In this document: positions 9,660 through 36,606 of the stretch, piece by piece | How positions within the stretch are numbered: position 1 is the first letter of the stretch | Layout of the letters: the number at the start of each line of letters is the position of its first letter | Assembly (NCBI RefSeq): GCF_000006765.1 | Contig: NC_002516.2 | From: Pseudomonas aeruginosa PAO1 | Lineage (GTDB): Bacteria > Pseudomonadota > Gammaproteobacteria > Pseudomonadales > Pseudomonadaceae | Length of the DNA: 64,000 nt | Reading direction: 5' to 3' (one strand) | Program-made: the position numbers and the translations under genes | Notes under the pieces: generated by a model | Seen by the model: only the letters and a program-made list of their open reading frames with translations | Told to the model about the DNA's origin: nothing | Databases searched by the model: none

Positions 9660-11237
9660 TCATTCCCACTCGATAGTCGCCGGCGGCTTGCTCGACACGT
9701 CGTAGGTGACCCGGGAGATACCGGCAATCTCGTTGATGATGCGGTTCGAGACCTTCTCCAGCAGTTCGTAGGGCAGGTGCGCCCAGCGCGCGGTCATGAA
9801 GTCGATGGTCTCCACCGCGCGCAGGGCGACGACCCAGGCGTAGCGACGGCCGTCGCCGACCACGCCGACCGATTTCACTGGCTGGAACACCACGAACGCC
9901 TGGCTGGTCTTGTGGTACCAGTCGAAGGCGCGCAGTTCCTCGATGAAGATGTGGTCGGCCTGGCGCAGCAGGTCGGCGTACTCCTTCTTCACCTCGCCGA
10001 GGATGCGCACGCCCAGGCCCGGGCCGGGGAACGGGTGGCGGTAGACCATGTCGTAGGGCAGGCCCAGCTCCAGGCCGATCTTGCGCACTTCGTCCTTGAA
10101 CAGTTCGCGCAGCGGCTCGACCAGTTCGAACTGCATGTCCTCCGGCAGGCCGCCGACGTTGTGGTGCGACTTGATCACGTGGGCCTTGCCGGTCTTGGCG
10201 CCGGCCGACTCGATCACGTCGGGGTAGATGGTGCCCTGGGCGAGGAACTTCACGTCCTGCAGCTTGGTGGCTTCTTCGTCGAAGACTTCGATGAAGGTGC
10301 GGCCGATGATCTTGCGCTTCTCTTCCGGGTCGGCGACGCCGGCCAGGCGGCCGAGGAACTTGTCCTCGGCGTTGGCGCGGATCACCTTCACGCCCATGTT
10401 CTCGGCGAACATGGCCATCACCTGGTCGCCTTCGTGCAGGCGCAGCAGGCCGTTGTCGACGAACACGCAGGTCAGTTGGTCGCCGATGGCCTTGTGCAGC
10501 AGCGCGGCGACCACCGAGGAGTCCACGCCGCCGGAGAGGCCGAGCAGGACCTTGGAGGAACCGACCTGGGCGCGCACGGTGGCGATGGCGTCGTCGACGA
10601 TGTTCGAGGGGGTCCACAGCGCGGCGCAACCGCAGATGTCGAGGACGAAGCGCGAGAGAATGCGCAGGCCCTGCTTGGTGTGGGTGACTTCCGGGTGGAA
10701 TTGCACGCCGTAGTAGGCGCGGGCATCGTCGGCCATGGCGGCGATCGGGCAGCTCGGGGTGCTGGCCAGGATGTGGAAGCCGGCCGGCATCTCGGTGACC
10801 TTGTCGCCGTGGCTCATCCACACGTCGAGGCCGAGCACGCCGTCGTCGTCCACGTGGTCCTCGATGCCGTCCAGCAGGCGCGCCTTGCCGACCACGTCGA
10901 CGCGGGCGTAGCCGAACTCGCGCAGGTCGGAGCCCTGCACCTTGCCGCCCATCTGCTCGGCCATGGTCTGCATGCCGTAGCAGATGCCGAACAGCGGCAC
11001 CTTCAGGTCGAACACCGCCTGCGGCGCGCGCGGGCTGTCGGCTTCGTGTACCGACTCGGGGCCACCGGCGAGGATGATGCCGCGCGGCGCGAAGGCGATG
11101 ATCGCCTCGTTGCTCATGTCGAAGGGATGGATTTCGCAATACACGCCGATCTCGCGCACGCGGCGAGCGATCAGTTGGGTGTACTGGGAGCCGAAATCGA
11201 GGATCAGGATACGGTGGGCGTGAATGTCTTGGGACAT
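9660..11237 (-). CDS. guaA: GMP synthase (glutamine-hydrolysing)
   Basis: [23 protein letters not shown] and C-terminal KPPATIEWE. Confidence 0.98.
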
Positions 11238-24583: not shown

Positions 24584-25345
24584 ATGACCGACTTCACCCA
24601 AGCCATCCCCGTTCTCCCGGAGCCCGACTGGCACGCCGTGGCCGGCATCCCCATCGTCGATGCCGGCACGCCGCTGGAGGCGCTCGGGCTGAGCCGCGAG
24701 TTCAGCGTCTGGCCGGCCTACCACAAGCTCGGCATTCCTCACGCGATCCCGGAGTGCCACGCTCGCGGCGAGGTCTTCGAGCGTCTCCTGCGGGTCGCCG
24801 CCGCCCTCCCCGGCGGCGTGCGCCTGGTGGTGCTGGACGCCTGGCGGCCGTTCGCCGTGCAGCAGTATCTCTACGACAGCCTGTCCAGCGCCCTGGCCGC
24901 GCACTACCCACGGGCCGGCGAGGCCGAGCTGGAACGGCTCACCCGCCAGTTCGTCTCGCCGCCGAGCAGCAGCCGCGAGGCGCCCAGCCCGCATCTCACC
25001 GGCGGCGCGGTGGACGTCACCCTGTGCGACGCCCAGGGCCGCTGGCTGGACATGGGCAGCGCCTTCGACGAAGCTGTGCCGGCCTCCTACACCGCCTACT
25101 TCGAACGCCTGGCGGAGCCCGACACGCGCCAGCGACGCGTCCGCGATCACCGTCGTCTGCTCTATCACGCGATGCTCGACGCCGGTTTCAGCAACCTGCC
25201 CAGCGAATGGTGGCACTACGATTTCGGCGACCAGCTCTGGGCCTGGCACACCGGCGCGACGCAGGCGCTGTTCGGCCCGGTGCAGTTGCAGGCGATGGAC
25301 GCGCTCTGGCGCCAGCAGTTGCAGAAGCGCCCTCCGGCGGACTAG
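24584..25345 (+). CDS. M15D (VanX/DdpX-like) D-Ala-D-Ala dipeptidase-family metallopeptidase
   Basis: LDAWRP, SPHLTGGAVD and EWWHYD zinc motifs; no signal peptide visible. Confidence 0.82.
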   Translation: MTDFTQAIPVLPEPDWHAVAGIPIVDAGTPLEALGLSREFSVWPAYHKLGIPHAIPECHARGEVFERLLRVAAALPGGVRLVVLDAWRPFAVQQYLYDSLSSALAAHYPRAGEAELERLTRQFVSPPSSSREAPSPHLTGGAVDVTLCDAQGRWLDMGSAFDEAVPASYTAYFERLAEPDTRQRRVRDHRRLLYHAMLDAGFSNLPSEWWHYDFGDQLWAWHTGATQALFGPVQLQAMDALWRQQLQKRPPAD

Positions 25346-26295
25346 GAGGCGAAGGCGCGCCGGTAGCCCAGCGGCGGCAGGCCGAACGCGGCGGAGAACT
25401 GCTGGCGCAACGACACCGCCGAACCGAAGCCGGCCAGCCCGGCGATCGCCTGCACCGAATGCTCGGTGGTTTCCAGCAGGCGCTGGGCCAGGGCCAGGCG
25501 TTCGGCCTGCAGCCACTGGCTGACGGTGGTGCCGGTGAGCTGGCGGAAATGCCGGGTGAAGGTCCGCCGGCTCATCAGCACCCGCTGTGCCAGGCTGTCC
25601 AGGCTGTGCGCCTGGTCGAGGTTCTGCCGCAGCCACACCAGCAGCTCGCCGAGACGGCCGTCCTGGGCACTGTCCGGCAGCGGCTGCTCGATGAACTGGG
25701 CCTGGCCGCCCTGTCGATGAGGCGCCACCACCAGGCGCCGGGCCAGGTGATTGGTAGTCTGCGCACCGAGCCGCTGGCGGACCAGGTGCAGACAGCAGTC
25801 GATGCCGGCGACGGTGCCTGCCGAGGTCAGCAGGCCGTCGTCCTCGATGTACAGCACGTCGGGCTCCACCCGCACCGCAGGGAAGCGCCCGGCGAAATCC
25901 TCCGCCCACATCCAGTGGGTGGTGGCGCGGCGACCGTCGAGCAACCCGGCCTCGGCCAGCACGAAGGCCCCCAGGCACAAGCCCACCAGTTGCGCACCGC
26001 GTGCACGGGCCGCGATCAACGCATCCAGCAGCGCTTGTGGCGGACGCTCGTGTGGATCGCGCCAGCTCGGCACGATCACGGTCTGCGCCTCGGCCAGCGC
26101 TTCCAGCCCGGCCTCGGCCTCGATGGTGAACCCCACCGTGGTTCGCAGCCGGCCCGGCTCGGCGGTGCAGACACGCAGGTCGAAGGCCTGCGCGCAGGGG
26201 TCGTAGCACTCCTGGCCGAACACCAGGCAGGGCACCGACAGGTGGAACGGACTGATGCGGTCGAAGGCCACCACGGCCACGGACTGGCGGGACAT
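25342..26295 (-). CDS. AraC-family regulator with DJ-1/PfpI domain (GlxA/FtrA type)
   Basis: GLCLGAFVLAEAGLLDGRRATTHW, TSAG..AGID and RQGGQAQF, plus the AraC HTH. Confidence 0.92.
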   Translation of the reverse strand: MSRQSVAVVAFDRISPFHLSVPCLVFGQECYDPCAQAFDLRVCTAEPGRLRTTVGFTIEAEAGLEALAEAQTVIVPSWRDPHERPPQALLDALIAARARGAQLVGLCLGAFVLAEAGLLDGRRATTHWMWAEDFAGRFPAVRVEPDVLYIEDDGLLTSAGTVAGIDCCLHLVRQRLGAQTTNHLARRLVVAPHRQGGQAQFIEQPLPDSAQDGRLGELLVWLRQNLDQAHSLDSLAQRVLMSRRTFTRHFRQLTGTTVSQWLQAERLALAQRLLETTEHSVQAIAGLAGFGSAVSLRQQFSAAFGLPPLGYRRAFAS

Positions 26296-26415
26296 GCACA
26301 CCTCGGTGGGTATGAGCGGGTTGGCCCGATTCTAGCGAAAGTTGTCTCTCAGGCCACTCACTCGCTACGCCGCGCCGGGACCAGAATCTGCCTCACCCAC
26401 TCAGGAGGAAACGCC

Positions 26416-27045
26416 ATGTCCGCACGTCAACCCAAACGCGCCTTGCTGGTCATCGACGTACAGAACGAATACGTCAGCGGCAACCTGCGTATCGAATTTC
26501 CCGCCATCCAATCGTCGCTGGAACGCATCGGCGCCGCCATGGATGCCGCCCACGCGGCGGGCATCCCGATCGTCGTGGTGCAGCACCTGGCACCGGCGGA
26601 CTCGCCGTTGTTCGCGCGCGGCAGCCGGCAGGCCGAGCTGCACGAGGTGGTCGCCTCGCGGCCCTACCAGCACAAGGTGGAAAAGCAACTGGCCAGTTCC
26701 TTCGTCGGCACCGGGCTGGCCGACTGGCTGCGCGAGCGCGGTATCGACACCCTCGCCGTGGTCGGCTACATGACCCAGCACTGCGACGACTCGACCATCC
26801 GCCAGGCGATCCACGAAGGCTGGCAGGTGGAATACCTGCACGACGCCAGCGGCTCGGTGCCCTACCGCAACCGCGCCGGCCAGGCCAGCGCGGAAGAGAT
26901 CCACCGGATCTTCGGCATCGTCCTGCAGTCCTCCTTCGCCGCCGTGCTCAGCACCGAGGAGTGGCTGGAAAGCCTCGCCGGCCGGCACGTTCCGGAACGC
27001 GACAACATCTACGACTCCAACCAGCGAGCCCTGGCCAACCGCTGA
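26416..27045 (+). CDS. Isochorismatase-family cysteine hydrolase
   Basis: ALLVIDVQNEY and VGYMTQHCDDST; AGGAGG RBS. Confidence 0.9.
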   Translation: MSARQPKRALLVIDVQNEYVSGNLRIEFPAIQSSLERIGAAMDAAHAAGIPIVVVQHLAPADSPLFARGSRQAELHEVVASRPYQHKVEKQLASSFVGTGLADWLRERGIDTLAVVGYMTQHCDDSTIRQAIHEGWQVEYLHDASGSVPYRNRAGQASAEEIHRIFGIVLQSSFAAVLSTEEWLESLAGRHVPERDNIYDSNQRALANR

Positions 27046-27050
27046 AACGG

Positions 27051-27074
27051 CGCCGCCCCCCACGCGGGGCGGCG
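27051..27074. terminator. Hairpin between convergent genes
   Basis: CGCCGCCCC/GGGGCGGCG 9-bp stem. Confidence 0.55.
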
Positions 27075-27079
27075 AGCGC

Positions 27080-27652
27080 TCAGCCGACCAGCGAGCCGCG
27101 CGCCGGCAACGGCTTCCAGCCCGGGAACTCGCGCAGCCGCGGGTCGGGCACCGCGCAATAGGCGAATGTCCAGTTCGGCGCCGGCAGGTCCAGGCGCTCC
27201 AGCGGCACACGCGTGCCGGCGCCGGCCTGCGGCGCCTTCCAGTCCTGGGTGATGTGCGCACCGCCCTGGCTGGCCAGGAGGATGCCGCGGTTGGCGCTGG
27301 TGTCGTCCACCGTCCAGCGCGCGGCGGAGGCGTCCATCAGCACCTCCAGATGCTCGTCGGTCACCTTGGCGCCGAACGGCGACTGCAACAGCCAGCAGTA
27401 CAGGCGCAGGTGCATCGCCCAGTTCCAGGCGGCCTTCTGCTCGGCCGCCCATTGCAGGAAACCACGGAGGATGGTCAGGCCATCCGGCGGATCGATCTTC
27501 AGCAGTTCCGGGCAAAGGTCGTAGAGATGGTGCCAGGCGCTGCTCAGGCGCTTGTTGAGCTGGTCCGGACGCAGGGTGGAGTTCTTCGGCGGCAGGCCGG
27601 GAGCCACCACCAGGCCGGTCTGCGCCGGCAAGGGATATCTGTTGCTGTTCAT
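27080..27652 (-). CDS. MbnC-like (methanobactin biosynthesis cassette / AZL_007950-type) protein
   Basis: 190 aa with a GAGG RBS. Blocks WHHLYDLCPELL, FLQWAAE, WLLQSPF, MDASAARW and FPGWKPLP match, in order, Methylosinus MbnC as I recall it. No alignment was computed. Confidence 0.75.
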   Translation of the reverse strand: MNSNRYPLPAQTGLVVAPGLPPKNSTLRPDQLNKRLSSAWHHLYDLCPELLKIDPPDGLTILRGFLQWAAEQKAAWNWAMHLRLYCWLLQSPFGAKVTDEHLEVLMDASAARWTVDDTSANRGILLASQGGAHITQDWKAPQAGAGTRVPLERLDLPAPNWTFAYCAVPDPRLREFPGWKPLPARGSLVG

Positions 27653-27708
27653 GCTCTGAACCTCGCACGCAAAGGCGGGGCGCCGGGCGCCCCTGCTCGA
27701 CACGGCGC

Positions 27709-28185
27709 TCAGTGGCCGTGCTGCTCGTGCCCGCCCTGTTCGGCCGGCGCCTTGGACTCGACGACGATTTCCACCGGCACGTCGCCGGCCTTGCGGAAAT
27801 GCAGCGTCAGCGGGAAGCGCTCGCCGGCCACCAGTGGCTGCTTCAGGCCCATCAGCATCAGGTGGTAGCCGCCGGGAGCGAAGCGCAGGTCCTTGCCTGG
27901 TGCGACGTCGACGCTGTCGACTTTCTGCATGCTCATCATGCCGTTCTTGTGCACATGCTCGTGCACCTCGGCGGAAGCCGCGCGCGGCGTGTCGGCGCCA
28001 AGCAGGGTGTCGTTTTCCTTGCCGTGGTTCTGCACCACGAAGTAGGCCGCGCCGTTCGGCGAGGTCGGCGGCAGGGCCAGCGCCCAAGGATGCTCGATGT
28101 GCAGTTGGCCGGCGTTGTACTCGTGGGCCTGGGCGAAAGCGGAAACGGCCAGCAGGGCCGCGGCAGCGAAGAAGGATGTGCGCAT
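27709..28185 (-). CDS. Periplasmic copper chaperone PCu(A)C
   Basis: Signal peptide; HEH..GMMSM...PGGYHLML (H-x10-M-x21-H-x-M pattern); His-rich tail. Confidence 0.92.
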   Translation of the reverse strand: MRTSFFAAAALLAVSAFAQAHEYNAGQLHIEHPWALALPPTSPNGAAYFVVQNHGKENDTLLGADTPRAASAEVHEHVHKNGMMSMQKVDSVDVAPGKDLRFAPGGYHLMLMGLKQPLVAGERFPLTLHFRKAGDVPVEIVVESKAPAEQGGHEQHGH

Positions 28186-28314
28186 GGTGACTCTCCAGTA
28201 GCGTATGACCGGTCTTTTTCCGTCGGACCGGCGATTCCAGGGGGGAAGCTAGGGTATTGCGCCGCGACCTGCCCCGACCCGAAGGTCCAGGTTGTCGAAG
28301 GCGCGGGGGAGGAG

Positions 28315-28704
28315 TCAGGCGACAGGAGAAGCGCGCGGATTGGCGAGGCGCCAATAGCGCAGGGGAGGCAGGTCGGTGGCGGAGAAGGCGTTACGGGCAG
28401 GGCTGGCCAGCGGCGCCAGCGGCAATGCCGGCCAGGAGGCGACCAGTCCGGGCGTGCCGGCGGCGCCGGCGCAGCAGCAGAGGTGCGGGGCCAGGCTCTC
28501 GTGGTCGTCGGGAAGATCGATGTCCTTGAGCGCGGCACCCAGCTTCAGGCGCAGCAGCGAATCGGACGAGGTGCTGCAGAAGCCACCGAGCAGCAACGAG
28601 GCGCGCTCCTGCGTCGTCAGCGCCTGCGAAAGCGGCACCACGAACAGGTTCATCAGCACGGCCAGGCTGGCCAGCCAGGCCACGGGGCGCCGTGACAGGG
28701 GCAT
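28315..28704 (-). CDS. DUF2946-type leader protein (N-terminal TM, Cys cluster, C-terminal PRASP)
   Basis: GGAG RBS; RRPVAWLASLAVLMNLFVVPL TM segment; GFCST; HLCCC; ends ANPRASPVA. Confidence 0.72.
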   Translation of the reverse strand: MPLSRRPVAWLASLAVLMNLFVVPLSQALTTQERASLLLGGFCSTSSDSLLRLKLGAALKDIDLPDDHESLAPHLCCCAGAAGTPGLVASWPALPLAPLASPARNAFSATDLPPLRYWRLANPRASPVA

Positions 28705-28875
28705 CGTCGGTTCTCCGGAGAATGGGCCCTTTATGCCTGAGCGCGGGGCAAAAGTAAAAACGCCGGGCGCGACAGAGTGCCGCAGGTGAAAACGTTTGCA
28801 ACCCTTGCGGGCTTTCCCCCGCCGCGCTCTTCCGCCAGCATAGACGGCTTTGACGCCCGACGAGTCGAGAAGCCG

Positions 28876-29724
28876 ATGCCCCGCACCCTAGCCTTCGTTT
28901 CCACGCTGTTGCTCGCCGCTTTCTGCGCCCTGCCCGCCCAGGCCGACAGCTTCATCATGCGCCTGCTGAACAAGCCGGTGCCCGGCGGGGTGGCGGTGGT
29001 CGACCTCGGCGAGGAAGGCCCGCCGCCGCGGGCCTTCTACCAGGGCAAGCCGGTGCTGGTGGTGCGCGAGGAAGGCCGCCGCTGGATCGCCGTGGTCGGC
29101 ATCCCGCTGAGCACCAAGCCCGGCCCGCAGAAGCTGGAAGTGCGGGCGGCAACCGGCAACCACGAGGAACGCTTCAGCGTCGGCAGCAAGCACTACCGCG
29201 AGCAGCGCATCACCCTGAAGAACAAGCGCCAGGTCAATCCGCTGCCGGAAGACCTCAAGCGCATCGAACGCGAACTCGCCGAGCAGACCGCCGCCTACCG
29301 CCGCTTCAGTCCCGGCCTGCCCAGCAACCTGATGCTCGACAAGCCGGTCGACGGTCCGCTCTCCAGCCCCTTCGGCCTGCGCCGCTTCTTCAACGGCGAA
29401 GAGCGCAACCCGCATTCCGGTCTAGACTTCGCGGTACCGGCCGGTACGCCGATCAAGGCGCCGGCGGCCGGCAAGGTGATCCTCATCGGCGACTACTTCT
29501 TCAATGGCAAGACGGTGTTCGTCGACCATGGCCAGGGCTTCATCAGCATGTTCTGCCACCTGTCGAAGATCGACGTGAAGCTCGGCCAGCAGGTGCCGCG
29601 CGGCGGCGTACTCGGCAAGGTCGGCGCCACCGGCAGGGCCACCGGACCGCACATGCACTGGAACGTCAGCCTGAACGACGCGCGAGTCGACCCGGCGATC
29701 TTCATCGGTGCCTTCCAGCCCTGA
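28876..29724 (+). CDS. M23-family peptidase
   Basis: Signal peptide; HSGLD (HxxxD) and GPHMH (HxH). Confidence 0.9.
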   Translation: MPRTLAFVSTLLLAAFCALPAQADSFIMRLLNKPVPGGVAVVDLGEEGPPPRAFYQGKPVLVVREEGRRWIAVVGIPLSTKPGPQKLEVRAATGNHEERFSVGSKHYREQRITLKNKRQVNPLPEDLKRIERELAEQTAAYRRFSPGLPSNLMLDKPVDGPLSSPFGLRRFFNGEERNPHSGLDFAVPAGTPIKAPAAGKVILIGDYFFNGKTVFVDHGQGFISMFCHLSKIDVKLGQQVPRGGVLGKVGATGRATGPHMHWNVSLNDARVDPAIFIGAFQP

Positions 29725-29763
29725 GAAGTGAGCAACGCGGCGCCGGCTGAGGTCAGAAGGAAC

Positions 29764-29788
29764 AGGGGGCGCGTCGATGCGCCCCTTT
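29764..29788 (+). terminator. Possible terminator after the M23 peptidase
   Basis: GGGGCGC/GCGCCCC stem followed by a short TTT. Confidence 0.45.
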
Positions 29789-29809
29789 CATGACCAAGGG
29801 AGACACCGC

Positions 29810-30205
29810 ATGACTCACCCGCTTCGCCTGCTCTGGCTGTGCTCGACACTGTTCGTGGTCCTCGGCCTGGGCTTCGTCTTCTTCCCCGGCCCGCTCGCCT
29901 CCCTGCTCACCAGCGGCGAACCGCTCACCCCCGCCGCCCTCACCGACCTGCGCGCCAGCTACGGCGGCACCAGCTTCGGCATCGGCCTGCTGCTCGGCTA
30001 TGCCGCCCTGCGCCCCCGCTACCTGGTGCTCGGCCTGCTCGCCGCCCTGGCGGTGATCGCCAGCGGCGGCGCGGCGCGCCTCTACGGTGTGCTGATCGAC
30101 GCCTCGCCGGCGCTAACCACCTTCCTCTGGCTCGGCGCCGAGGCGCTGCTCTGCGTGCTGTTGCTGGCGGCACTCTGGAAGACCCGCCAGCTCGACCTCG
30201 ACTGA
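29810..30205 (+). CDS. Small 4-TM membrane protein (DUF4345-like)
   Basis: LTDLRASYGG motif and hydrophobic helices; GGGAG RBS. Confidence 0.65.
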   Translation: MTHPLRLLWLCSTLFVVLGLGFVFFPGPLASLLTSGEPLTPAALTDLRASYGGTSFGIGLLLGYAALRPRYLVLGLLAALAVIASGGAARLYGVLIDASPALTTFLWLGAEALLCVLLLAALWKTRQLDLD

Positions 30206-30222
30206 GCGCCGGGCAGCAGGTC

Positions 30223-31638
30223 TCAAGCCAGGACCCGGCGAACCGCCGGCAGCCGCGACAGCACCAGCCAGTCCAGCGCCCAGACCAGCAGGAGCGAGGC
30301 CCCCACCAACGGGAAGGCCACGCCCAGCGCCAGCATGATGGCGATGCCGGTCTTCCAGCGCGGCAGCTCGTGGCGCAGCGGCGGCACGCCAAGGCGTCCG
30401 GCCGGCTTGCGCTTCCACCAGATCCACAGGCCGCTCGCCGAGCTGAGCAGGATCGCCAGGCAGACCGCGAGCATCAGCAACTGGTTGCCGAGGCCGAAGA
30501 GCTTGCCTTCGTGCAGCACGACGCCCATCTGCACGCTCCTCGCCACCGCGTTGTAGTCCTGCCAACGCACGTCGGCGAGAACCTTGCCGCTGTACTGGTC
30601 GATGTGCAGGGTGGCGTCGTGGCGCGGATCGTCGGGGAACACGGAAATCGTGTAGACCCCCTCCATCCCGCTCGGCAGGGCGATCCCGTAGCCCGCCGCC
30701 ACGCCGCGCTCGCGGGCGATATCCACCACCCTTTGCAGAGGGATGCCCGCCGGCATCGGCATGTCCATCGGCATCGCGTGCCCGGCCTGGGCGGAATGCC
30801 CGCGATGCTCGGCATGGGCGTCGGCCGCCGGCGGCTGCGAGCGCGGCAGCGGAGTGTTCTCCAGCGGCCAGGGCACCTGCTGGCGCGACGCGCTGTTGAG
30901 GCTACCGGCCTGCATGTCGGAGGTCGGCACATCGTTCCACATCGCCGCCGGGAAACGGTTCCAGACATCGGCGAACTGCTTGCCCCAGTAGCCGGTCCAG
31001 GTCATCCCGCTGAGCAGCATGAAGAGCAACAGCAGGCTGCCCCAGAAACCGGCGAGCACATGTAGCTCGCGCCACAGCGGTCGTCCGCGCAGGTGCAGGC
31101 GCGGCCAGAACAGCGCGCTCGCCGCCCGCCCGCGCGGCCACCATAGGTAGAGACCGGAGACCACCAGGACGATGCCCCAGCCGGCGGCCAGCTCGATCAG
31201 CCGGTCGCCGACGGTCCCGACCATCAGCTCGCCATGCAGTGCCCGGGCCACCGCCTGGAGATTCAGCTGCGCATCCTGGCGGCCGAGTTCGCGCCCGCTG
31301 TAGGGATCGACGAAGAGGTTCCATTGCCTGCCCTCTTCGCCAATCACGAATTGCGCGCTGCGCCCCGCCTCGCTCGGCGGCAGGTACTGGCTGACGGCGG
31401 CCTGCGGGTGCGCCTGGCGCACCCCGACGAGCAACTGGTCGGCGCTGCGCATCTGCGCACCGGCCTCGACCCGCAGCAGTTGCGGATAGAGCAGCGCATC
31501 CAGTTGCGGCTTGAACAGGTAGACGATTCCGGTCAGCGCCAGCAGGATCATGAAGGGCGCGACGAACAGGCCAGCGTAGAAATGCCAGCGCCAGGCCAGC
31601 GCGTAGAAGTCACGGCCGTTCTTTTCGTTCGATTGCAT
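30223..31638 (-). CDS. PepSY-associated TM helix protein (PepSY_TM)
   Basis: WRWHFYAGL, LHGEL, SGLYLWWPR, LHVLAGFW, LHEGKLFG; His/Met-rich periplasmic loop. Confidence 0.9.
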   Translation of the reverse strand: MQSNEKNGRDFYALAWRWHFYAGLFVAPFMILLALTGIVYLFKPQLDALLYPQLLRVEAGAQMRSADQLLVGVRQAHPQAAVSQYLPPSEAGRSAQFVIGEEGRQWNLFVDPYSGRELGRQDAQLNLQAVARALHGELMVGTVGDRLIELAAGWGIVLVVSGLYLWWPRGRAASALFWPRLHLRGRPLWRELHVLAGFWGSLLLLFMLLSGMTWTGYWGKQFADVWNRFPAAMWNDVPTSDMQAGSLNSASRQQVPWPLENTPLPRSQPPAADAHAEHRGHSAQAGHAMPMDMPMPAGIPLQRVVDIARERGVAAGYGIALPSGMEGVYTISVFPDDPRHDATLHIDQYSGKVLADVRWQDYNAVARSVQMGVVLHEGKLFGLGNQLLMLAVCLAILLSSASGLWIWWKRKPAGRLGVPPLRHELPRWKTGIAIMLALGVAFPLVGASLLLVWALDWLVLSRLPAVRRVLA

Positions 31639-31702
31639 GGATCACCTCATCGGAGCGCACACAGGCAAGGCGGGCCCCGCTGGACGGGGCCTCGTTGAAG
31701 GT

Positions 31703-33874
31703 TCAGAAGCTGAAGTCGACCTTGGTCCAGAAGGTCCGGCCCGGCTCTGGAACCGTTTCGTTGGCGGAGAAACCGAAGCCGGCGTCGCCGGCCTTGTTCA
31801 GGTGCTCGGTGTAATCCTTGTCGAACAGGTTATCGACACCGGCGCTCAGCTTGACGTTGCGAGTCACCCGGTAGGCGCCGTTGAGCGAGAAGACGCCGAA
31901 GCCGGCGCTCTTGTCGAAGTCCTTGCCGACCACGTTGCCCTGGTCCCTGGCGATGCGATTCTGCGGCGCGACCACCCGCCACAGGCTGCCGGCACTCCAG
32001 TCGCCTTCCTCGTAGGTCAGGCCGAAGCGCGCTTCCAGCGGCGGGATCTGCGGCAGCGCGCGGTCGTCCGAGCTGTTCTTGCCCCAGGCATAGGCCAGGC
32101 TGGCGTCGGTCTTCCAGTTGCCGGTGAGCTGGTAGGAAGCGCCCAGCTCGCCGCCCATGATCCGCGCGTCGACGTTGGTCGCCTGGGTCGAGGAACCCAT
32201 CATGCCCTCGCGATAGCTGAACAGGATGAAGTCCTGGACCACCCCGACGTAGCCGGAGGCCCAGGCCTGCAGCTTGTCGCCGTTGTACTGGAGGCCGAAG
32301 TCGAGCTGGGTGGTCTTTTCCGGCTTGATCTTGTCGAAGGCGTTGACCGACCCGTTCGGCCCGCGCTTGGGCGAGAACAGCTCCCAGTAGTCGGGGAAGC
32401 GCTCGGCATGGCCGAGGCCGGCGTAGAGGGTGGTCGGCGAGTCGGCGAGGTCGTGCTCGTAGCGCACGAAGCCGCTGGGCAGGGTATCGGCGCGGGTGTC
32501 GTTGGCCGTCGGGTTGGCCATGGCGTGGCCCATGTGCCCGGACTTCAGGGTCTGCCGGTAGTCCTTGACCGAGGCGCGGTCCAGGCGCAACCCGCCGATC
32601 AGCCGGTCGCGCTCGGCGGCGAACCAGGTCAGTTCGCCGAAGGCCCCGTAGTTGTGGAACACCGCGTCCTTGCTCCAGGGGAACTGGTCGGCGTCGGTGT
32701 AGTAGTCGGTCATCATGTCGTACTTGGAGCCGCGCGCGCGGTGCTCGTTGCGCATGGCGTCGACCCCGGTGACCAGCTTGAAGTCGTCCCAGCGCCAGGT
32801 GGCCGCCAGGCGACCGCCGAGGGTGCGTCGGTCCACCTGGGACGCCATCGGCATGGGCATCATGCTGGATGGGTCGGGAGTGCGCAGGCGGAAGTTGTCC
32901 ATGATGTGGTCGGCGTAGTTGTAGTAGACCTGTGCCTCGACCTTCTCCAGCACATCGCTGACGTTCGATTTGACGAAGCGCAGGCCCAGGCTCTCGCGCT
33001 TGAACTGCGAGCCGTCCATGCCGCGCCCGGCGTAGCGTGCCTCGCCGTCGCCCTTGCCGGCGGTGAGTTCGATCAGGGTGTCCTCGTCGGGGGTCCAGCC
33101 GACCGCGACGTCGCCGTTCCACTTCTTCCAGCGCGACGGCACGGTATTCCCGGCGCCGTCCTCGTAATCGTCGGACTGCGCGTGGTTGCCGGTGAAGCGC
33201 AGGTAGCCGAGCCGGTTGCCGGCGGCGGCGTCCAGCACCTTGTCGAAGCGGCCATTGGAGCCGGCCAGCAGGCTGGCGTTGACCCGCGAGCCGAGTTCGC
33301 CGAAGCGCTCCGGCTCACGCTCGAAGAGGATCGTCCCGGCCGACGCGCCCGGCCCCCAGAGCACCGTCTGCGGGCCCTTGATCACGGTGAGCTTGTCGTA
33401 GGTTTCCGGCGAGATGTAGGAGGTCGGCGCGTCCATCCGGTTCGGACAGGCACCGAGCATCATGCCGCCGTTGGTGAGGATGTTCAGGCGCGAACCGAAC
33501 ATCCCGCGCAGCACCGGGTCGCCGTTGCTGCCGCCGTTGCGGATCACCGCGAAGCCGGGAATGGTCTTCAGGTAGTCGGCCCCATCGCTGGCCGGCACCG
33601 GTTGGCGCGGCTCCTTGGGATTGGTGACGATGGTCAGCGGCGAACTCTGGGCGACTCCGGTGACCACGCTCGGCGCCAGCTCCACGGCGTGATCCTGGTG
33701 CTGTGAGTGTTCCTCGGCCAGGAGCGCCGACGGAGACAGGGCCAGGCCGCACAGTGCGGCGAAGGCTCCCGCCCAGCGGCGGCGTTGTGCGAGACGGGCA
33801 GGGTCGAAGCTGAAAGCGGCGGTCGGGCAGGCGTTGCCGGCCGCTCGTTGTTGAGTAGACATACGTTTTTCCAT
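31703..33874 (-). CDS. oprC: TonB-dependent copper receptor OprC
   Basis: TonB-receptor layout, GACPNRMDAP (CxxxM copper site), Met-rich loops, terminal DFSF. Confidence 0.95.
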   Translation of the reverse strand: MEKRMSTQQRAAGNACPTAAFSFDPARLAQRRRWAGAFAALCGLALSPSALLAEEHSQHQDHAVELAPSVVTGVAQSSPLTIVTNPKEPRQPVPASDGADYLKTIPGFAVIRNGGSNGDPVLRGMFGSRLNILTNGGMMLGACPNRMDAPTSYISPETYDKLTVIKGPQTVLWGPGASAGTILFEREPERFGELGSRVNASLLAGSNGRFDKVLDAAAGNRLGYLRFTGNHAQSDDYEDGAGNTVPSRWKKWNGDVAVGWTPDEDTLIELTAGKGDGEARYAGRGMDGSQFKRESLGLRFVKSNVSDVLEKVEAQVYYNYADHIMDNFRLRTPDPSSMMPMPMASQVDRRTLGGRLAATWRWDDFKLVTGVDAMRNEHRARGSKYDMMTDYYTDADQFPWSKDAVFHNYGAFGELTWFAAERDRLIGGLRLDRASVKDYRQTLKSGHMGHAMANPTANDTRADTLPSGFVRYEHDLADSPTTLYAGLGHAERFPDYWELFSPKRGPNGSVNAFDKIKPEKTTQLDFGLQYNGDKLQAWASGYVGVVQDFILFSYREGMMGSSTQATNVDARIMGGELGASYQLTGNWKTDASLAYAWGKNSSDDRALPQIPPLEARFGLTYEEGDWSAGSLWRVVAPQNRIARDQGNVVGKDFDKSAGFGVFSLNGAYRVTRNVKLSAGVDNLFDKDYTEHLNKAGDAGFGFSANETVPEPGRTFWTKVDFSF

Positions 33875-33932
33875 GATCTATGTGACTTCCGCCCCGCCCC
33901 CACGGCGAGCAGGCACCCGGCCAGGCTCGCGT

Positions 33933-33959
33933 CACCGGCGCGGCGAAGACGCGCCGGTG
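33933..33959 (-). promoter_or_regulatory. 10-bp hairpin in the DUF2946-oprC spacer
   Basis: CACCGGCGCG/CGCGCCGGTG perfect stem with a 7-nt loop. Confidence 0.55.
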
Positions 33960-33994
33960 CCCCCAGGAAGCGGCGGCTATCGGATTGAAAGAGG

Positions 33995-34456
33995 TCAGGC
34001 GATCAGGAACGGCGGCGCACGGGTACGGGCGCCGGGAAACACCGGCGAGGCGACGAACGCCTCGTTCAGGAAAGCGACGGCGGGCGCCGTCGCGAAGGGA
34101 ACGGAGAACAGCGCCAGGCAGGCGTCTTCGGTGAGCGGCGGGCTGTGGAACAACAGGCTGCAATAACCGCACTTCTCCCAGAGCACGTCGCTGGCCAGGC
34201 GATTGCCTTCCTCGCCGCCCATCCCCGGCATGCCGGCATGGACGACGGAGCGCTGGGCATCGGAACAGCCGGCATGGGCCATGTCGCCATGGTCCATGTT
34301 CTCGTGGGACATGCCTTCGTGGCCCATCCCCACGCCCATCGGCATCGGGTGGTCCATCGGCATCGACTGGGAGATCAGCGGCCCGACGAAGATCATCAGC
34401 ATGGCGAACAGAGCCAGCCATGCACCGATGCCTTGTCGTTTCAGAGTGGTCGCCAC
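33995..34456 (-). CDS. DUF2946-family (CruR-like) leader protein with CxxC and RAPP
   Basis: GTG start with GGAG RBS; N-terminal TM; Met/His-rich segment; KCGYC; ends GARTRAPPFLIA. Confidence 0.85.
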   Translation of the reverse strand: MATTLKRQGIGAWLALFAMLMIFVGPLISQSMPMDHPMPMGVGMGHEGMSHENMDHGDMAHAGCSDAQRSVVHAGMPGMGGEEGNRLASDVLWEKCGYCSLLFHSPPLTEDACLALFSVPFATAPAVAFLNEAFVASPVFPGARTRAPPFLIA

Positions 34457-34744
34457 CTGCGACTCCCGCCGTCTTGAATGAAGACCACCGCGTAGCGGGC
34501 CGGATGGCCGCTCGCGCCGGGTCATGCCGAAAAGAAGAATGCGCCTGTCGTTATACGCCCCAGGCACGGGGAACGAAATGATCGCACAAGGGCGGCTGGC
34601 TCTTCTGCGGCATGGGGCCGCAGAATTTTCCGTTGCGGAGAGCGTGCCGGCGGCGCAATCGAGGACAAGCTTTCACCGCAGAGAAAGAATAAAAACCCAC
34701 AAAAGCCGCACAAATGGGAAATTCTACTAATTTTCCTTTAATGC

Positions 34745-34773
34745 TTGCCATTCAAATGCAGTCTCACTAGTGT
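34745..34773 (+). promoter_or_regulatory. sigma70 promoter upstream of the leuA leader
   Basis: TTGCCA-17 nt-TAGTGT, preceded by an A/T-rich tract. Confidence 0.6.
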
Positions 34774-34780
34774 GGTACGC

Positions 34781-34858
34781 ATGAAAACACCACACACCCT
34801 CATCCTGCTCCGCCAACACGCCTGCCTGTGCCTGGTCAGCCCGCGACTGCGTGGCTGA
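34781..34858 (+). CDS. Putative leuA leader peptide (25 aa, 6 Leu)
   Basis: [25 protein letters not shown]; below the size cut-off of the ORF track. Confidence 0.6.
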
Positions 34859-34935
34859 GCGACGCTTCTCTTCATCTCGTCACTGCGTTCGCCTGGCCCC
34901 GCCGGCCCAGGAACCGACTCCAAAGGATTAGCCCC

Positions 34936-36606
34936 ATGAGCATGTTGAAAGACCCTTCGCAGAAATACCGCCCATTCTCGGCCATCAATCTGCCCGACCG
35001 CACCTGGCCGTCGAAGACCATCACCGAGGTGCCGATCTGGTGCAGTTCCGACCTGCGCGACGGCAACCAGTCGCTGATCGAACCGATGGACGCGGCGAAG
35101 AAGATGCGATTCTTCAAGACCCTGGTGCAGGTCGGCCTGAAGCAGATCGAAGTGGCCTTCCCGTCGGCTTCCGATACCGACTTCAACTTCGTCCGCGAGT
35201 TGATCGAAGGCAACCACATCCCGGACGACGTCACCATCCAGGTGCTGACCCAGGCCCGCGAAGACCTGATCACCCGCACCTTCGAATCCCTGCGCGGGGC
35301 GAAGAAGGCCATCGTCCACGTCTACAACGCCACCGCCCCGTCGTTCCGCCGCATCGTCTTCAACCAGGACAAGCAGGGCGTCGTGGACATCGCCACCAAC
35401 GCCGCGAAACTGATCAAGAAGCTGGCCGCCGAGCAACCGGAGACCCAGTGGTCGTTCCAGTACTCGCCGGAAATCTTCAGCTCTACCGAGCTGGAGTTCT
35501 CGGTGGAGGTCTGCAACGCGGTGATCGACGTCTGGCAACCGACCCCGGACAACAAGATCATCCTCAACCTGCCGGCCACCGTGGAGTGCGCCACGCCGAA
35601 CGTCTACGCCGACCAGATCGAATGGTTCGGCCGCCACGTCGACAAGCGTGACAGCGTGATCATCAGCCTGCACACCCACAACGACCGTGGCACCGGCGTG
35701 GCCGCCACCGAGCTGGGCCTGATGGCCGGCGCCGACCGCGTCGAAGGTTGCCTGTTCGGCAACGGCGAGCGCACCGGCAACGTCGACCTGGTGACCCTGG
35801 CCTTGAACATGTACACCCAGGGCCTGCATCCGCAACTGGACTTCTCCGACATCGACGCGGTGCGCAAGGTGGTCGAAGAGTGCAACCAGTTGCCGGTCCA
35901 CCCGCGCCATCCATATGTCGGCGACCTGGTCCATACCGCTTTCTCCGGCTCGCACCAGGATGCCATTCGCAAGGGCTTCGCCCAGCAAAAGGAAGACGCG
36001 ATCTGGGAAGTGCCGTACCTGCCGATCGATCCGGCCGACATCGGCCGCGACTACGAAGCGGTGATCCGGGTCAACAGCCAGTCCGGCAAGGGCGGCATCA
36101 CCTTCCTGCTCGAACAGGAGTACGGCATCAGCCTGCCGCGGCGCATGCAGATCGAGTTCAGCCAGGTAGTGCAAGGCGAGACCGACCGTCTCGGCCTGGA
36201 AATGACCGCACAACAGATCTACTCGCTGCTGGAAAACGAATACCTCAAGGCGACCTCGCCCTACGTCCTCGCCAGCCATCGCCTGCAGGAAGAGAACGGC
36301 ACCAGCGCCGTCGACCTGGAAGTCTCCTTCGACGGCGAGAAGCAGCACTGGCGCGGGATCGGCAAGGGACCGCTGGAAGCCTTGGTGGCCGCCCTGCCGG
36401 TCAAGGCGGAAATCATGGACTACCATGAGCACGCCATCGGCGCCGGCGCCAATGCCAAGGCCGCGGCCTATATCGAGATCCGCCTGGAGGGCCAGCGCCC
36501 GCTGCACGGCATCGGCATCGACGAGAACATCACCACCGCCAGCTTCCGCGCCCTGTTCAGCGCGCTGAACCGCGCGGTGACCCAGGCCGAGGCCAAGGCG
36601 GCCTGA
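34936..36606 (+). CDS. leuA: 2-isopropylmalate synthase
   Basis: DLRDGNQ, HTHNDRG and GNGERTGN; AAGGA RBS before ATG at 34936. Confidence 0.97.

Follow-up and report, generated by a model that had tools for sequence, protein, structure and literature searches.

Two DUF2946-headed copper operons of Pseudomonas aeruginosa PAO1 as candidate CruR-type leader-controlled units

How Pseudomonas aeruginosa lowers the expression of oprC, the gene of its TonB-dependent copper receptor, under copper stress was still called unknown in 2021 (PMC8610252). In the stretch of P. aeruginosa PAO1 DNA analysed here (64,000 nucleotides (nt) of contig NC_002516.2, hereafter the window, whose positions are used throughout), oprC lies in one of two neighboring minus-strand operons, each of which begins with a small DUF2946 gene. 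The question raised by this locus is whether these first genes act as leaders governing the copper genes behind them. We consider, with a probability of about 60%, that both units are copper-repressed acquisition operons, each controlled in cis by its first gene acting as a nascent-peptide sensor of the type of CruR from Bordetella pertussis. Such a leader would provide a directly testable answer to the down-regulation of oprC.

Unit 1 comprises, in this order and entirely on the minus strand, leader 1 (PA3791-like, 153 amino acids, 33995-34456), spacer 1 (33875-33994), oprC (31703-33874) and a gene encoding an inner-membrane PepSY_TM protein (PA3789-like, 30223-31638). Unit 2, also on the minus strand, comprises leader 2 (PA3786, 129 amino acids, 28315-28704), spacer 2 (28186-28314), the gene of a PCu(A)C periplasmic copper chaperone with a signal peptide (PA3785-like, 27709-28185) and that of an MbnC-like protein without one (PA3784-like, 27080-27652). 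This gene content was matched by locus to PA3784-PA3792 of P. aeruginosa, DUF2946 proteins of this species share 98-100% identity with leader 2, and the whole block is collinear with the window in P. paraeruginosa. Both first open reading frames (ORFs) belong to PF11162, with 87 bits for leader 1 (E=2e-24) and 60.4 bits for leader 2 (E=3.7e-16) against a cut-off of 23.7. A hidden Markov model (HMM) search of the 64-kb window returned exactly two DUF2946 frames, both heading same-strand operons of copper-related genes; this placement is far beyond chance.

The identities of the downstream genes were established by domain and residue analysis. The oprC product matches the TIGR01778 equivalog with 1129 bits (cut-off 472), and its residues C143, M147, H323 and M325 (CxxxM-HxM) agree with the published copper site (PMC8610252). 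The PepSY_TM protein (PF03929, E=5e-72; PF03413) is a putative periplasmic metal reductase, a role suggested by analogy with FoxB (PMC8610252) and CrpH (PMC13038864). The PCu(A)C protein (PF04314, E=1.6e-40) carries the H(M)x10Mx21HxM motif, starting at residue 75, and is matched by solved PCu(A)C relatives. The MbnC-like protein scores 234.7 bits with TIGR04061 (cut-off 124). An earlier note on this DNA, made from the letters alone, had described two parallel units with the same layout, and its coordinates were accurate; all of its gene identities were correct, including the MbnC-like call, which is further supported by the match to the solved MbnC 7fc0 and by the fold match detailed below.

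Members of the CruR family have been defined by a CxxC motif, an RAPP motif, 45 residues between the two (plus or minus one or two) and an export signal, and by their position as the operon's first gene, followed by a long spacer, with a region of C in excess of G (C>G bubble) that spans the leader 3′ end and reaches into the spacer (PMC9426467). Leader 1 starts with GTG, 6 nt past a GGGAG Shine-Dalgarno (SD) sequence. It possesses a hydrophobic segment at residues 10-28 (Kyte-Doolittle 19-residue maximum 2.34), CGYC at 96-99 and RAPP at 146-149, followed by the four residues FLIA and UGA. Leader 2 shows a hydrophobic segment at residues 8-26 (maximum 2.02), CCC at 76-78 within H-L-C-C-C and RASP at 124-127, then two residues and UGA, its C-terminus reading W-R-L-A-N-P-R-A-S-P-V-A-stop; PA3786 has been predicted with an N-in transmembrane segment (PMC4665194). 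The spacing between the cysteine motif and RAxP is 46 residues in leader 1 and 45 in leader 2. The N-terminal transmembrane segment, cysteine motif and R-A-x-P that the earlier note ascribed to DUF2946-type leaders are thereby borne out.

The spacers, announced as 120-130 nt long with a pyrimidine- or C-rich start, measure 120 nt (spacer 1, with a weak SD sequence for oprC) and 129 nt (spacer 2). Pyrimidines make up 63% and 71% of their first 35 nt, with C versus G at 37% versus 26% in spacer 1 and 51% versus 17% in spacer 2. On the mRNA strand, C>G bubbles extend from about 34170 to 33920 in unit 1 (C minus G up to +21%) and from about 28580 to 28230 in unit 2 (up to +31%), both spacers sitting at the downstream edge of their bubble. 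Every CruR feature listed above is found in unit 1, which reads as a canonical member of the family. Unit 2 deviates only in the exact letters of the two motifs, which appear to place it in a distinct subfamily (HxCCC, NPRASP). Family, motifs, spacing, C>G bubble, gene order and conservation in relatives are all direct observations on the DNA.

Leader 1 also contains a Met/His-rich segment (34202-34366, minus strand, MPMDHPMPMGVGMGHEGMSHENMDHGDMAH...), which is reminiscent of periplasmic Cu(I)-binding tracts. It counts 13 Met/His over 40 residues; among 121 relatives the median is 4. Comparison with P. paraeruginosa showed about 96% identity from CGYC to the stop and throughout spacer 1, the indels within leader 1 being confined to the Met/His region.

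By analogy with B. pertussis CruR, from which arrest, copper sensing by the leader, dependence on Rho and the direction of regulation are carried over, the following mechanism can be proposed. A ribosome translating the leader would arrest at the C-terminal R-A-P/S-P core, at a point where the cysteine motif, 45-46 residues upstream, would just have cleared the exit tunnel. At low copper, the arrested ribosome would cover the C-rich 3′ end of the leader and block either the loading of Rho or its access to the polymerase, so that transcription would run on into oprC-PepSY_TM in unit 1 and PCu(A)C-MbnC-like in unit 2. Copper bound to the emerging cysteine motif would relieve the arrest and let the ribosome terminate, after which Rho would end transcription inside the 120-130-nt spacer. 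Copper-repressed, Rho-dependent attenuation is, on this analogy, the most likely mode of control.

P. aeruginosa also carries PA0433/0434, a third DUF2946-transporter unit. In an N-acetylcysteine transcriptome, PA3784, PA3785 and oprC rise along with PA0433/0434, and neither leader gene (PA3786, PA3791) appears in the list (PMC9431628); this is the pattern expected for attenuation past the leader. PA14_15120-15130 act as one operon in another data set. Copper repression of oprC in P. aeruginosa, with a cruR homologue ahead of it, was reported by Roy et al. 2022 (PMC9426467). The leader of oprC is therefore already known, having been named there as a predicted case. The earlier note's appeal to the Bordetella precedent for a copper-repressed TonB receptor is correct. 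Arrest of CruR at RAPP has been demonstrated in vitro (PMC12992588).

Relatives were collected to determine whether the unusual motifs of leader 2 recur. A word-indexed homologue search with leader 2 gave P. aeruginosa copies only, and relatives were thus reached through the MbnC-like gene: a 7-sequence alignment of its product fetched 73 loci (designated L001 onwards, L001 being P. paraeruginosa), nearly all from Pseudomonas or Stutzerimonas, in which purpose-built HMMs identified 121 DUF2946 and 76 MbnC-like frames. Among the 121 leaders, about 95 have the C-terminus W-P-x-x-N-P-R-A-S-P plus 0-14 residues or, in Stutzerimonas, N-P-R-A-P-stop, while about 19 end in RAPP, frequently within the same W-P-x-x-[NS]-P context. 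Across the 73 loci, W-P-x-x-N-P-R-A-(S)-P marks a large leader subfamily of the Pseudomonadaceae. Of 101 non-redundant leaders of all subtypes, 100 have 42-46 residues between cysteine motif and core, and the HxCCC of leader 2 recurs in 19 non-redundant relatives. That unit 2 has a degenerate or dead leader, or a decayed RAPP, was considered and rejected, its motifs being kept across many species.

RAPP and RASP leaders stand before the same cargo. In other Pseudomonas species, true OprC orthologues (65-73% identity) follow a RAPP leader in some cases and an NPRASP leader in others, and the two cores therefore appear functionally interchangeable. The components of the two window units also occur together elsewhere. 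In five loci of other Pseudomonas species (L041, L051, L060, L061 and L069), a region reaching 10 kb to each side of the MbnC-like gene gathers PepSY_TM, an OprC orthologue, PCu(A)C and MbnC-like in varying order, together with Sco1, cytochrome c and two or three DUF2946 leaders. This reshuffled clustering supports a functional link between the two window units, and the earlier proposal that they form one regulon is reasonable, the joint rise of PA3784, PA3785, oprC and PA0433/0434 under N-acetylcysteine being indirect published evidence for it. Its suggestion that the two leaders are differently tuned is plausible, since they fall into different motif subtypes.

Among the same loci, tandem DUF2946 genes, two or three in number, were observed upstream of the MbnC-like gene in L009, L013, L037, L044 and L050. 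In L010 and L018 (9351-9735), the upstream leader seems frameshifted past its second transmembrane segment; an intact DUF2946 gene of RAPP type is found behind the MbnC-like gene instead.

Several observations weigh against copper-repressed attenuation by CruR-type leaders. The signature motifs of leader 2 differ from those of CruR, with CCC for CxxC and RASP for RAPP. In ApcA, ApdA and ApdP, the third-position proline tolerates at most glycine, and RASP abolished arrest in all three peptides (PMC12992588); arrest of the ribosome at the RASP of leader 2 is therefore a prediction from its conservation. The local hairpins described in the spacers exist, including one with a perfect 10-bp stem in spacer 1, but whole-spacer folding energies are no better than those of shuffled sequences (z=-0.75 for spacer 1, -1.42 for spacer 2), so the hairpins do not exceed what G+C-rich composition gives.

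The C>G bubble calls for similar caution. It recurs in the family: a meta-profile over 87 leaders of NPRA(S)P type and 15 of RAPP type gives a C minus G of +16 to +18%, against about +1% in 1091 control genes. A synonymous-site test for a selected Rho utilization (rut) site was negative, third-position C versus G over the last 40 codons being the same as in control genes (p=0.82). Although real as RNA composition, the bubble is fully accounted for by Pro/Ala-rich coding and is therefore not independent evidence of rut-site selection. In a copS mutant, oprC is repressed further (PMC7763554), which implies that a trans-acting layer exists. Finally, the searchable literature yielded no experiments on leader 1 or leader 2.

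Control could also be exerted at the translational level, instead of or besides Rho, in the style of SecM-secA or CutF-cutO: an anti-SD sequence at or after the leader stop would mask the next ribosome-binding site, which would become accessible only during ribosome arrest at the leader end. The earlier note had placed control at translation. The output of the CruR precedent is Rho-dependent transcription termination, and what stands of that claim is a weak SD-masking signal restricted to unit 2. There, UGACUCCUCC, at or just past the stop of leader 2, is complementary to the PCu(A)C SD sequence GGAGAGUCA, and the duplex (-15.3 kcal/mol, z=-2.8, p=0.01) follows a design for which CutF provides a precedent (PMC9973294). 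In P. paraeruginosa this pairing is gone (-8.3 kcal/mol, z=+0.7) because the first ~85 nt of spacer 2 have diverged: leader 2 is about 97% identical between the two species, whereas spacer 2 (28186-28314, compared with L001:9346-9476) is almost unalignable over that length and conserved only in its last ~55 nt, unlike spacer 1. The two sense codons past RASP would moreover place the anti-SD at the margin of what an arrested ribosome covers.

Masking is also suggested by Stutzerimonas-type loci, in which the order is leader, MbnC-like gene and cytochrome bd subunits I and II, all in the same direction, and in which the leaders run directly from R-A-P into UGA. The same anti-SD design is strongly enriched in the 19 non-redundant loci of this type: the 27 nt that begin at the leader stop pair with the SD region of the MbnC-like gene, which lies some 100 nt farther on, with a mean of -16 kcal/mol, a mean z of -2.5 and 68% of loci at p<=0.05. 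The helix shows compensatory changes, for instance between L028 and L042, and covaries in L012, L023, L025, L027, L028, L042, L045, L057, L065, L067, L070 and L071 (at ~9800-9925 in most). A ribosome arrested on RAP-UGA would cover the anti-SD arm, a design also seen in SecM and CutF. By contrast, neither the 31 Pseudomonas RASP leaders (z=0.08) nor the 5 RAPP leaders are enriched in such duplexes, and the unit 1 duplex reaches only p~0.1. SD sequestration as a general mechanism of Pseudomonas RASP leaders was consequently rejected on that z of 0.08, and masking in unit 1 is unlikely. For the locus as a whole, we regard a translational output as a tentative proposal, on the unlikely side.

According to a second alternative, the DUF2946 genes would encode ordinary envelope copper-binding proteins, co-transcribed with their neighbors, and copper repression would come from trans-acting regulators, such as CopRS or one responding to copper starvation, at promoters located ahead of the leaders or within the spacers. 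The stronger repression of oprC in the copS mutant fits this view, the conserved last ~55 nt of the otherwise diverged spacer 2 could carry a promoter or operator, and some DUF2946 proteins, such as CzcI, are without the proline motif. As the earlier note had stated, no copper transcription factor is encoded in the cluster, the nearest regulator being of AraC/DJ-1 type (25342-26301); this leaves room for regulation in trans. On the other side, a scan of 26900-34900 for sigma-70-like promoters found none, and a search for a common operator was negative, the two upstream regions sharing no 14-mer with up to 2 mismatches (0 observed, 0.54 expected). The tight Cys-to-RAxP spacing and the conservation of the C-terminal core are hard to explain in a mere binding protein, and both CruR (PMC9426467) and CutF act only in cis and were undetected as stable proteins. 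Taken together, trans-acting control as the whole explanation seems to us improbable.

A reversed polarity of unit 2, with copper inducing its downstream genes as in CutF, is very improbable: DUF2946 members of either polarity are known (CruR versus CutF) and leader 2 departs from CruR in both motifs, but the PCu(A)C cargo is of the acquisition or assembly type, PA3784 and PA3785 rise together with oprC and PA0434 under N-acetylcysteine (PMC9431628), and in Stutzerimonas this type of leader stands ahead of cytochrome bd, which is copper-independent, an arrangement that is sensible only if scarcity raises expression. A copper-independent oxidase behind a copper-sensing leader indeed fits expression at low copper.

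The last gene of unit 2 raises a question of its own, since its product resembles the peptide-binding protein of methanobactin-type systems. Against TIGR04160 (MbnC), it scores 139.6 bits, under the equivalog cut-off of 185, and a phmmer comparison with the solved MbnC 7fc0 gave E=2.9e-26. The AlphaFold2 (AF2) model (predicted local distance difference test, pLDDT, 80.3) has 7fc0_C as its best Foldseek match (E=1.2e-10, template-modelling score 0.72), and MbnC chains are its sole PDB fold matches, with no non-MbnC match at E<1. The protein is rare, with 97 clusters at 50% identity among 1.84 billion proteins. Pseudomonas-rich distant relatives of MbnC, corresponding to TIGR04061, had already been noticed by Kenney and Rosenzweig 2013 (PMC3621798).

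These relatives are separated from the enzyme MbnB. A tblastn search of the 64-kb window for MbnB was negative, and no MbnB (PF05114) lies within 10 kb of leader-linked MbnC-like genes on either side. Among the 76 MbnC-like frames, MbnB adjoins only five true MbnCs, each directly behind it, and these five form one separate clade with 100/99 support. For 61-65 of the 71 remaining, MbnB-less genes, a DUF2946 gene ends at most 450 nt upstream on the same strand; two of the 71 lie at contig ends. PCu(A)C is inserted between leader and MbnC-like gene in three cases: the window, P. paraeruginosa and L034. Such leader-MbnC-like pairs occur across L002-L072 (e.g. L003:9280-10456 and L045:9434-10459; 27080-28704 in the window). 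Judged from these loci, about 90% of the MbnB-less MbnC-like genes lie directly behind a leader of the W-P-x-x-N-P-R-A-(S)-P type. The searchable literature contained no paper mentioning both MbnC and DUF2946, and the NPRA(S)P/HxCCC subfamily, with its near-obligate pairing with an MbnB-less MbnC-like gene, is apparently undescribed.

Since MbnC grips the leader peptide of MbnA, the MbnC-like protein might, by analogy and on the comparative grounds given above, serve the NPRA(S)P leader as a dedicated partner in the cytoplasm, binding the nascent chain at the ribosome exit, a role we consider speculative and rather doubtful. Binding would then set or release the arrest, in a feedback comparable to that of SecA on SecM. 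Alternatively, the protein could present the cysteine motif, either to sense copper or to have it modified by an unlinked enzyme. If the partner role is true, the MbnC-like protein and the leader would together form a nascent-chain copper sensor with two components, one of them a borrowed recognition protein of ribosomally synthesized and post-translationally modified peptides (RiPPs). Separately, a small ORF (about 18-40 codons, starting M-A-[RH]...) was observed between leader and MbnC-like gene in L003, L007, L009, L013, L017, L026, L037 and L044 (e.g. L009:9830-9900). A strong SD sequence (GGAAAGGAGC / GGTAAGGAGC) precedes it, and its end coincides with or overlaps the start codon of the MbnC-like gene.

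The two units are parted by a plus-strand pair (28777-30205) that belongs to neither, as the earlier note had also seen in describing an oppositely oriented M23 peptidase and a small membrane gene. The M23 peptidase (PF01551, PF18421) is called at 28777-29724, with a true start likely near 28876, and the DUF4345 membrane protein (PF14248) at 29777-30205. Between the stop of the MbnC-like gene and a convergent isochorismatase-family gene, a G+C-rich hairpin was read from the sequence at 27046-27079 (GCCGCCCCGCGTGGGGGGCGGC, then GCCGTTTCAG). It likely marks the end of unit 2; the terminator scan did not pick it up, and the same scan detected no intrinsic terminator within either spacer. An Rfam scan of 26500-35200 at E<=1 gave no significant family, its only hit being a chance-level Guanidine-III match inside the PepSY_TM gene. 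On the plus strand at 34603-34625, where leader 1 and leuA diverge, a terminator-like hairpin (TTCTGCGGCATGGGGCCGCAGAA then TTTTCC) is present some 200-300 nt ahead of leuA. It may represent a leader or attenuator element of leuA or a stop for antisense transcripts.

With two leader subtypes (CxxC/RAPP and HxCCC/NPRASP) adjacent in one genome, the locus constitutes a natural test system, in which one can ask side by side whether the cysteine motif sets copper affinity. A genuine RASP arrest core would widen the known RAPP/RAGP rule. The Stutzerimonas leader before cytochrome bd suggests that nascent-peptide copper sensing may also drive a respiratory-oxidase switch. The pairing found here further raises the question of why an MbnC-like peptide-binding protein without its enzyme is tied to leaders across the Pseudomonadaceae.

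Among known systems, the closest is CruR (Bp2923) of the B. pertussis cruR-crtA(bfrG)-crpH operon, which belongs to the same Pfam family as both leaders (PMC9426467). Like leader 1, it is the first gene of a copper-uptake operon with a TonB-dependent transporter and a PepSY_TM protein; it shares with the window leaders the cysteine motif about 45 residues before R-A-x-P, the N-terminal export or transmembrane segment, the long spacer and the C>G bubble that extends into it from the leader 3′ end. The differences are that the transporter of unit 1 is OprC (TIGR01778) and not a CrtA-family receptor, that the window spacers measure 120 and 129 nt against 162 nt for CruR, that leader 1 carries the Met/His-rich insert, and that leader 2 combines CCC and RASP with a PCu(A)C and MbnC-like cargo.

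CutF of the Rhodobacter capsulatus cutFOG operon is likewise a cis-acting DUF2946 leader with a cysteine motif and a proline-containing C-terminus (PMC9973294; bioRxiv 10.1101/2025.02.05.636593). Its stem-loop, to which the helix of the Stutzerimonas relatives, and perhaps that of unit 2, is comparable, masks the next SD sequence. It differs by its CxxxC and PPP motifs and by the induction by copper of a detoxifying oxidase; the cargo in the window serves acquisition, and the expected polarity is the opposite. For the last gene of unit 2, MbnC (7fc0, 7tcr; PMC3621798) is the nearest known protein in both sequence and predicted fold, in a different setting: the window holds neither MbnB nor MbnA, and upstream of the gene, beyond PCu(A)C, lies a DUF2946 leader.

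SecM-secA, ApdA, ApdP and ApcA monitor protein export and are freed by pulling force, in which they differ from the mechanism proposed here. They resemble the window leaders in their C-terminal R-A-x-P core and in the control of a downstream gene by an exported small protein (PMC12992588), and the core of SecM itself, RAGP, indicates that its third position is not strictly proline.

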